A stretch of DNA of 64,000 nucleotides from Glycera tridactyla (lineage: Eukaryota), in the NCBI GenBank assembly GCA_965644265.1, contig OZ286469.1:64666001-64730000 (forward strand), in the 5' to 3' direction. The translations under genes were made by a program, and so were the position numbers. The notes below the pieces were generated by a model. It did no database searches. It had not been told where the DNA came from and saw nothing but the letters and a program-made list of their open reading frames with translations. The first letter of the stretch is position 1; every line of letters starts with the position of its first letter. Of the stretch, positions 50,741 through 52,790 are shown one piece after another.

Positions 50741-52766
50741 TCTAATGCAAGAGGAAGTGATGAAACCAATTGCTTACAGCAAGTGCAAATTATTCACATT
50801 AAATGTACTCTGGTGGGAAGTATAGAAAGTCACTGCTTCACGGAAAACAAGTGCACACAGTCCCACACCCACCCANNNNNNNNNNNNNNNNNNNNNNNNN
50901 NNNNNNNNNNNNNNNNNNNNNNNNNNNNNNNNNNNNNNNNNNNNNNNNNNNNNNNNNNNNNNNNNNNNNNNNNNNNNNNNNNNNNNNNNNNNNNNNNNNN
51001 NNNNNNNNNNNNNNNNNNCCACACACACACAATAGCTCATTTCTGAGCAATATCTAGAATGTTCTGCAAGGCAAATCGGCAATATTCACGCTGACTCATT
51101 AAGGTACGAACAAGTCGGAAAAGTGGATAAAAGCGTGATAAATCTTGCTATCAATGCTCAGGTGGCCGTAAGTGGAGTAATTTCGTCATGATGCTGAAGG
51201 CAATCAGCGACACAATTCGCAACAACAATGACTGCAATCGGTAAAGATCAACATGAATAAAGGAGTCAAACTGATACGAATCATGCAACAACAACGACAA
51301 CGACAATGCCACCACAGCATCAAGAACAAAGTTCTCACATTTCAAAGATGAACCCTTTATATCACTCCATCATTGTCAAGCTAACAAAAGGGTTGCATCA
51401 GCCAAATTCTCTCTTCTATCCTATTAACGAATAGATATTGAATTCTACTATAGGAAGACATATCTGAGAACTATCCTATATGCAACATTATATTCTACCT
51501 TACAGATTGAGACAGGTATTGAATTAATCCACCAGAAGGCAGGCAGGCACATGCCCAGCATAATTCAGAATCAAATTACTTTGAGATGCATTTCTTTGAA
51601 TTCAAAGAATTTCTCTGAAAACTTTGTTATAATCTATAGCCTATGTTGTGGAATATCCCAAATCATCTCGTATAAGTCAGACATCCGACTGCATTCAGCG
51701 TCTCTGGAATGAGTTGCGGAAATCATGAATCACTGCATTAAAAGAAGGTATTGCAGTCTACATATGAATATTATCACAAAGCTTGCAAGGAGCTGCAGAG
51801 AAAACTTGTGATGGAGAGCCAAAAGGAGTAAAATGCCCATCATAACGTAACAGGAGATCACTTTTCTGGTCAAATCCTCTACTTGAGAGAGTGAAGTATG
51901 TAACTGAGTAGAGTGAGCACTTGCCATATCAGACCACTTTCCCGTGTCATTCAAAGCATTTCACTTTCAGTCGCCATCATTCCATGTTCATCACATCAAA
52001 CAGATCAAAAGTTTCACATACTTTTCTACCCTCACCAAGACGTGGACTGAACAATGATTATCTCCTCAGCTATTTTTCAATTCTCCACTTTCGAAATCAC
52101 TTCAAATTATAAGAGAACCATGGTGACTATAATCTACTCTACTGGCTAAATGAAGGCCAGTGGACAATATTGCGAATAATTTGTGAATTCGGGAGTACAC
52201 TGATTCTGAAACGGTGCAGACGAGCCCGGGATAAGATTAAAGAAGACCAAGATGAACCGAGGTGAACTACATTTGCATTTGTGGAAAACAAGCAAGGCAA
52301 TCGGTGAGTGAAGCCAAGGTTAATGTGGCCATAGTGCAGAGCAGCATGTCAGTGGCGGACTTTAAGTAACAATGACAAAACGTTCGTAAATCTCAGGTAA
52401 TTGCTGCAAACGAAGGTTGGAACTGTTAGCGCGCAGGTGGGTGGCCAACCACTCTGTCGCAAAGAATCGCTGCCACATCTAGTCATGCTATCCAAATGAC
52501 ATGCTTATACGGTGCGAAAAACGTGCACGCAACGACTCACCACCATCTTGGATTATCAGGCCTCATTCATTTCACAAATAAGGCCATACTGATCTACATC
52601 CAAAGGTATGTCTGAGCATTTTTTTTATGTCTGAGCTTCTTTCTATTTTGCAATAATTCTGAGAGAAATGATGGAAACTCAAATCACATATTCATGATAC
52701 GCAAGTGAACAAGAAAGGTACACTCATCTTATGCCGGCATCAAAATGATGATCGAATAACACAAAT

Positions 52767-52790
52767 ACTCACCTGAAACGAAAAAAAAAA
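52767..52790 (-). promoter_or_regulatory. Recursive splice site / ratchet-point motif (3' splice site fused to a 5' splice site)
   Basis: Minus strand TTTTTTTTTTCGTTTCAG|GTGAGT with the junction at 52773/52772, on the host-gene strand within a very long intron. It was the only such strong motif found in a manual scan of the window. Confidence 0.55.

Follow-up and report, generated by a model that had tools for sequence, protein, structure and literature searches.

A candidate recursive-splicing site followed by an AT donor look-alike in the 107-kb TIA-1 intron of Glycera tridactyla

The TIA-1 locus and the site at 52773|52772

The window, the whole stretch of 64,000 nt analysed here, comes from contig OZ286469.1 of Glycera tridactyla (C29:64,666,001-64,730,000; genome 2.04 Gb) and carries part of a TIA-1/TIAR gene on its minus strand. 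Scans covered a region of 264 kb, composed of the window, 140 kb past its end and 60 kb ahead of its start; coordinates above 64000 continue the window numbering past the window end. Exons were searched separately against solved structures and were joined solely to verify the reading frame. The exon encoding the start of RRM2 has human TIA-1 as its top PDB match (2mjn_A, E 1.4e-11), and the PDB matches of the exon encoding the end of RRM1 are limited to TIA-1 and TIAR RRM1. The latter exon has its 3' boundary at window coordinate 141990 (C29:64,807,990), 78 kb past the window end, where it finishes in phase 1 with ...GCA, phase-compatible with 34800 according to the frame check on the joined exons. 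Since both exons join in frame, the intron between the RRM1 end and the RRM2 start runs from 141989 to 34801 (107,189 nt) and holds the site at 52773|52772. An earlier note on this DNA had assigned the site to the TIA-1 transcription unit, and the identity of the two flanking exons bears this out.

Elsewhere in the gene, exons for RRM3 are located 15 and 27 kb ahead of the window start. Motif scans found no RRM1 exon in the window upstream of the RRM2 exon, and none of RRM1 exons 1-3 up to 140 kb past the window end (204 kb in continued numbering). The window contains six runs of N of 132-256 nt (16991-17132, 35369-35518, 45760-45891, 50876-51018, 53517-53721 and 61444-61699), and the long open reading frames that cross them are artefacts. 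Positions 62750-63640 belong to a repeat family with at least 79 genomic matches elsewhere, at 73-95% identity.

The features on which the analysis bears are the following, those beyond 64000 being given in continued window numbering:

34713..34800, minus strand: first RRM2 exon of the TIA-1/TIAR gene, 88 nt, encoding the RRM2 start and opened by the acceptor at 34801
34801..52772, minus strand: last (sixth) intron segment, from the candidate ratchet point to the 34801 acceptor, 17,972 nt
52535..52540, minus strand: second GTGAGT, preceded by TG, 232 nt past the junction; a chance-level feature
52541..52772, minus strand: proposed 232-nt RS-exon, with a stop after 14 codons if included
52700..52718, minus strand: positions +10 to +28 past the 'dead' donor, CCTTTCTTGTTC..., 9 of 19 being T
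52722..52730, minus strand: 'dead' donor AAG|ATGAGT, a U1-type consensus with A for G at +1 (this A is 52727)
52728..52772, minus strand: 45-nt pseudo-exon, from the candidate ratchet junction to the AT donor look-alike, with an in-frame TAA at 52732-52730 (frame of the upstream exon)
52767..52772, minus strand: recreated donor GTGAGT, which would be regenerated on joining the upstream exon (...GCA) to 52772
52773..52810, minus strand: 3' splice-site half of the candidate ratchet point, with candidate branch region ACTTAAAC at 52800-52793, T10 at 52790-52781 and CGTTTCAG with its AG at 52774-52773
52773..64000, minus strand: in-window part of the fifth segment, which as a whole runs from the candidate ratchet point at 66246, past the window end, over 13,474 nt
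142047-141990, minus strand: RRM1-end exon, encoding EMKVNWATSPGNQPKQDTS, with donor GTAAGT

The sequence T10-CGTTTCAG|GTGAGT that had been read at 52773/52772 on the minus strand is right at each of these positions, with CGTTTCAG ending at 52773, and the distance to the 34801 acceptor, put at about 18 kb, measures 17,972 nt. Pyrimidines make up 16 of the 20 nt upstream of the acceptor. Positions 52450-52900 match themselves alone in the 2.04-Gb genome, so that the site is not a copy of a repeat. The locus displays the pyrimidine tract and the YAG abutting a consensus GTRAGT that define a fly-type ratchet point at the sequence level, but the short RS-exon that follows is not closed by a functional GT donor, the motif at +45 carrying AT instead. 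This exon-closing motif equals the consensus at 8 of 9 positions and has A where catalysis needs G.

Recurrence of the cassette in the TIA-1 intron and in the genome

Both strands of the intron were scanned for AGGTRAGT with at least 14 pyrimidines in the 20 nt upstream. In sense orientation, the 107,189-nt intron holds five sites that combine a pyrimidine tract with YAG|GTRAGT, and in antisense orientation none; a single AGGTRAGT occurs on the antisense strand in all, regardless of tract. Simulating the intron with first- and third-order Markov models gives chance expectations of 0.30 and 0.22 sites, respectively (Poisson P of about 1.6e-5 for five or more). The junctions lie at 119162, 105525, 81429, 66246 and 52772, which makes 52773|52772 the fifth and 3'-most site of the chain, and they delimit six segments of 22,827, 13,637, 24,096, 15,183, 13,474 and 17,972 nt. 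Such even spacing is unexpected, given that five random points would leave all gaps at 13,474 nt or more with P = 9e-4. Outside the motifs, the flanks of the five sites are mutually unrelated.

A MAG|ATRAGT motif lies downstream of all five sites, at +37, +46, +38, +47 and +45. Across the 264-kb region this motif occurs nine times in sense orientation, five of them within these cassettes, and five times in antisense. The window holds one match to the composite pattern, and 100 shuffles of it yielded none. No cassette was found in the remaining TIA-1 introns within the 264-kb region. A GT donor within 300 nt downstream is present at one of the five TIA-1 sites, namely 52773|52772.

The cassette was then searched genome-wide as TTNYAGGTRAGT-N25-42-MAGATRAGT, with the reversed pattern as control. 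With each of the four bases at +1 in the second motif, the counts were:

A at +1: 166 matches; reversed control 7
G at +1: 84 matches raw, about 38 outside three tandem arrays; reversed control 24
C at +1: 17 matches; reversed control 6
T at +1: 11 matches; reversed control 7

The arrays that inflate the count of the GT variant are minisatellites with YAG|GTGAGT in each unit (C34:997229-998038, C47:36807310-36807971 and C17:102520071-102564808). Without acceptor context, the two-motif pattern is unenriched (299 matches vs 404 for the reversed control); thus, the downstream motif alone proves nothing, and it was the TTNY in front that created the contrast. Bins of equal gap width on either side of the cassette pattern hold 37 and 55 matches, which indicates a preferred pseudo-exon length of 34-51 nt.

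Cassettes of strict consensus number about 250 genome-wide. A T-rich upstream tract is present in 40 of 40 sampled cassettes, although the pattern demanded just TT, and the mean pyrimidine content of the sampled cassettes at -25..-4 is 0.75. The first 100 matches listed include 22 pairs of neighbours no more than 200 kb apart, against about 1.6 expected if cassettes were scattered, and all 22 share the same strand (P = 2.4e-7). This strand-coherent clustering is characteristic of chains within long introns; as to conservation of the AG|GT core between species, the recurrence of the design at many unrelated loci can serve at most as a stand-in. Taken together, the motifs, their departure from randomness, their strand specificity and spacing, and the genome-wide recurrence of the cassettes are established.

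Some cassettes show additional features. An X-box-like palindrome (GTTNCCATGGNAAC and near variants) is found inside the pseudo-exon in about one tenth of them, sometimes right after GTRAGT (for example C28:28641098, C17:88044436, C51:33290397 and C17:88544438), a frequency far above chance for a motif of 12-14 nt; no clear copy is present at any of the five TIA-1 sites. Additionally, a dispersed repeat with at least eight near-identical copies contains a 36-nt mini cassette, TTACAG|GTAAGT...CAG|ATAAGT (for example C10:16421901, C17:34067674, C29:59326267, C31:1699118 and C39:71757728), and the cassette motif may therefore also be carried by a mobile element. Pairs of nearly identical cassettes separated by 30-220 kb, of which one pair is inverted (C17:70906150/70937831, C11:17060787/17096506 and C4:88411165/88634065), suggest that some cassettes spread by segmental duplication, inside one intron or from one intron to another.

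Interpretation of the cassette

We propose, with a probability of roughly 0.6, that 52773|52772 acts as a ratchet point for recursive splicing whose exon-defining donor is non-cleavable. Five such points would split the TIA-1 intron of 107 kb into pieces ranging from 13.5 to 24 kb, and this one is the 3'-most. According to this model, the strong acceptor (branch region, T10 and CAG) would be recognised by exon definition together with a U1 snRNP that occupies AAG|AUGAGU, 45 nt downstream. The upstream exon, with the earlier segments already removed, would be joined to 52772, recreating GCA|GUGAGU. The A at +1 of the downstream U1 site would prevent completed splicing to an AG acceptor, and, that site being uncleavable, the recreated GU would be the sole productive donor. 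The 45-nt pseudo-exon would then depart with the last 18-kb segment. U1 binding at the AT site, the inability of this site to splice and the actual stepwise removal of the intron are what we infer from the sequence pattern.

Donors mutated at G+1 engage the splicing machinery and cannot complete GT-AG splicing, while the first step is still possible. First-step splicing at an A+1 site would be wasteful, which counts against the proposed model. The preference for A over C and T at this position, of at least 10-fold, suggests more than the loss of G. Possible causes are a requirement that goes beyond base pairing and, alternatively, a transition bias from GT ancestors. A U1 variant with the 5' end ACUUAUCUG, able to pair with A+1, was sought and not found: the 42 scored U1 copies score alike and the one copy that was read is canonical. 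The sole genomic match to the ACUUAUCUG pattern, in a search with one exact pattern, is not U1 by Rfam. As for the U1 snRNA genes themselves, at least 42 with identical scores form a tandem array with a period of about 2.1 kb (C4:77045576-77171102), the copy with the canonical 5' end being one of them.

The earlier note had described a textbook recursive site with a defined RS-exon, and its two parts fared differently. The sequence features of a recursive splice site are all present, and the site belongs to an evenly spaced, strand-specific chain, but the donor that was to define the 232-nt RS-exon occurs at background level. The second donor TG|GTGAGT is indeed present at 52540-52535, the 232-nt interval is not a multiple of 3 (232 = 3x77+1), and its inclusion would bring a premature stop, the stop codon being the same TAA that lies inside the 45-nt stretch. 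Across 45 cassettes, GTRAGT occurs at 5.7e-4 per nt from the dead donor to +400, at 5.1e-4 upstream and at 5.8e-4 in the region at large. A live GTRAGT within 400 nt downstream is found at 5 of the 45 sampled cassettes and at none of the other four TIA-1 sites, and a donor of the +232 type is expected by chance at about one site in six. Given this background rate, the +232 donor is not an enriched donor of a vertebrate-type RS-exon, and live downstream donors are dismissed as a general feature of the cassette.

These counts weigh directly on the reading in which the ratchet point is defined through the 232-nt RS-exon up to the live donor at 52540, as part of a poison-exon switch by which TIA-1 would control its own transcript. 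In its favour are the presence of the donor, the out-of-frame exon with its stop after 14 codons, the occurrence of PDB 6eld, a TIA-1-U1-C fusion, among the structure-search results, and the action of TIA proteins in bringing U1 to donors ahead of U-rich tracts (PMC2964331). Human TIA1/TIAL1 crosslink 10-28 nt downstream of donors and help to recruit U1 to those with U-rich tracts (PMC2964331). In the cassettes, the T content at +10 to +28 is 0.42 after the dead donor, as compared with 0.305 for the recreated donor and 0.294 for sequence lying farther downstream (Wilcoxon P of 3e-6 and 8e-6, respectively). The T-rich interval after the dead donor coincides with the TIA crosslink window, in what is a modest, purely correlative and genome-wide enrichment. 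T content after the five TIA-1 sites is not above that of other cassettes, and the same cassette occurs about 250 times in the genome, in other genes. Nothing singles out autoregulation when the cassette is so generic and the TIA-1 sites are no richer in T; the switch between the recreated and the poison-exon donor that had been put forward thus finds no specific support. With one TIA-1 site in five followed by a nearby GT donor and GTRAGT at background, we consider the reading through the 232-nt RS-exon quite unlikely. A different link to TIA-1 can be imagined, in which the AU look-alike and its U-rich tail would constitute a TIA-dependent, non-cleavable U1 anchor for every recursive step in this animal; because the TIA-1 gene would need five such steps for its 107-kb intron, the level of TIA-1 would then feed back on its own mRNA. 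We regard this idea as speculative and as a long shot.

The cassettes might also be selected binders of U2AF/U2 and U1 with another role, such as suppression of premature cleavage and polyadenylation in giant introns, polymerase pausing or control of intron retention through decoy exons. Two U1-type sites within 45 nt would suit such a role, clustered strand-coherent chains fit any co-transcriptional role in long introns, and both decoy exons (PMC7373989) and unused intronic U1 sites (PMC4387717) are known. Nevertheless, the exact YAG|GTRAGT juxtaposition, the strong tract and the even spacing suit a splice-then-resplice process and are unnecessary for U1 binding alone, so we deem a non-recursive role unlikely. 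Another alternative takes the AT site as a live donor, through U2-type AT-AC splicing or A-to-I editing (AU to IU), with the 45 nt as a regulated micro-exon. The rare AT-AC introns of U2 type carry ATAAGT or ATGAGT at their 5' end, which counts for this alternative, as does the preference for A over C and T. It is nonetheless very improbable: the next acceptors along the chain are AG, and the reading frame would be ruined both by the in-frame stop and by the pseudo-exon lengths, which are 37, 46, 38, 47 and 45 nt at the TIA-1 sites and not multiples of 3 in 33 of 45 sampled cassettes. As regards chance motifs or membership in a repeat family, the region is indeed repeat-rich, but the site occurs once in the genome, the five sites have nothing in common outside the motifs and five were observed where 0.3 were expected. 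Chance and repeat origin are ruled out by these counts, the single copy and the dissimilar flanks, and we give them practically no credence.

Comparison with known systems

Recursive splicing has been demonstrated in flies and vertebrates, and a literature search of limited extent found no report of it in an annelid, a mollusc or another lophotrochozoan. Ratchet points with cryptic RS-exons reportedly occur in the Drosophila genes Ubx, kuz and Bx, in work attributed to Hatton in 1998, Burnette in 2005, Duff in 2015 and Joseph in 2018 and 2021, and RS-exons of vertebrates are said to have been described by Sibley in 2015 and Blazquez in 2018. As to the gene under study, the TIA-1 gene model gains a 107-kb intron with five predicted intermediates.

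The Glycera site resembles vertebrate RS-exons in that an AG|GT site would be defined through a downstream exon whose inclusion leads to a premature stop. It differs from them in the closing donor, since the RS-exons of vertebrates are as long as ordinary exons and end in live GT donors, whereas the sole such donor here, at +232, is at chance level. The AT motif is comparable, in turn, to intronic U1 sites that are unused as donors, such as the TSA motif of mod(mdg4) (PMC4387717) and those of decoy exons (PMC7373989), which are complementary to the U1 5' end and act by binding rather than cleavage. Those sites serve trans-splicing or intron retention, and they lack the pairing with a candidate ratchet point, at a fixed distance, that the AT motif shows. 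A further likeness, to TIA-1/TIAR-dependent donors, lies in the T-rich stretch that follows the dead donor at +10 to +28, which corresponds to the window described for those proteins (PMC2964331); the enrichment is modest and genome-wide.

The closest parallels and the most telling differences are with flies. There, ratchet points depend for exon definition on a cryptic RS-exon of some 50 nt with a donor at its end; the recreated donor outcompetes that of the RS-exon, and weakening the recreated donor leads to inclusion of the cryptic exon with loss of function (PMC8605326; PMC6110457). Glycera shares with flies the abutting acceptor and donor, the long pyrimidine tract and the arrangement of multiple sites at even intervals along introns of tens of kb. 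It also shares a short candidate cryptic exon ending in a U1-type site, which in flies is needed for recognition and is absent from the mRNA (PMC8605326; PMC6110457). The downstream site of flies, however, is a working, weaker GT donor that is used if the ratchet donor is mutated, while the candidate site of Glycera is an otherwise consensus donor with A+1. In this regard, A+1 should rule out inclusion of the cryptic exon, which the weaker fly donor merely disfavours. If the cassettes are used, stepwise intron removal would be widespread in a third major animal branch, and they would amount to a natural experiment that tests both the exon-definition model of recursive splicing and what U1 binding achieves by itself. 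The danger of including the cryptic RS-exon would then have been solved differently from flies, with an exon-defining donor that is uncleavable rather than weaker.
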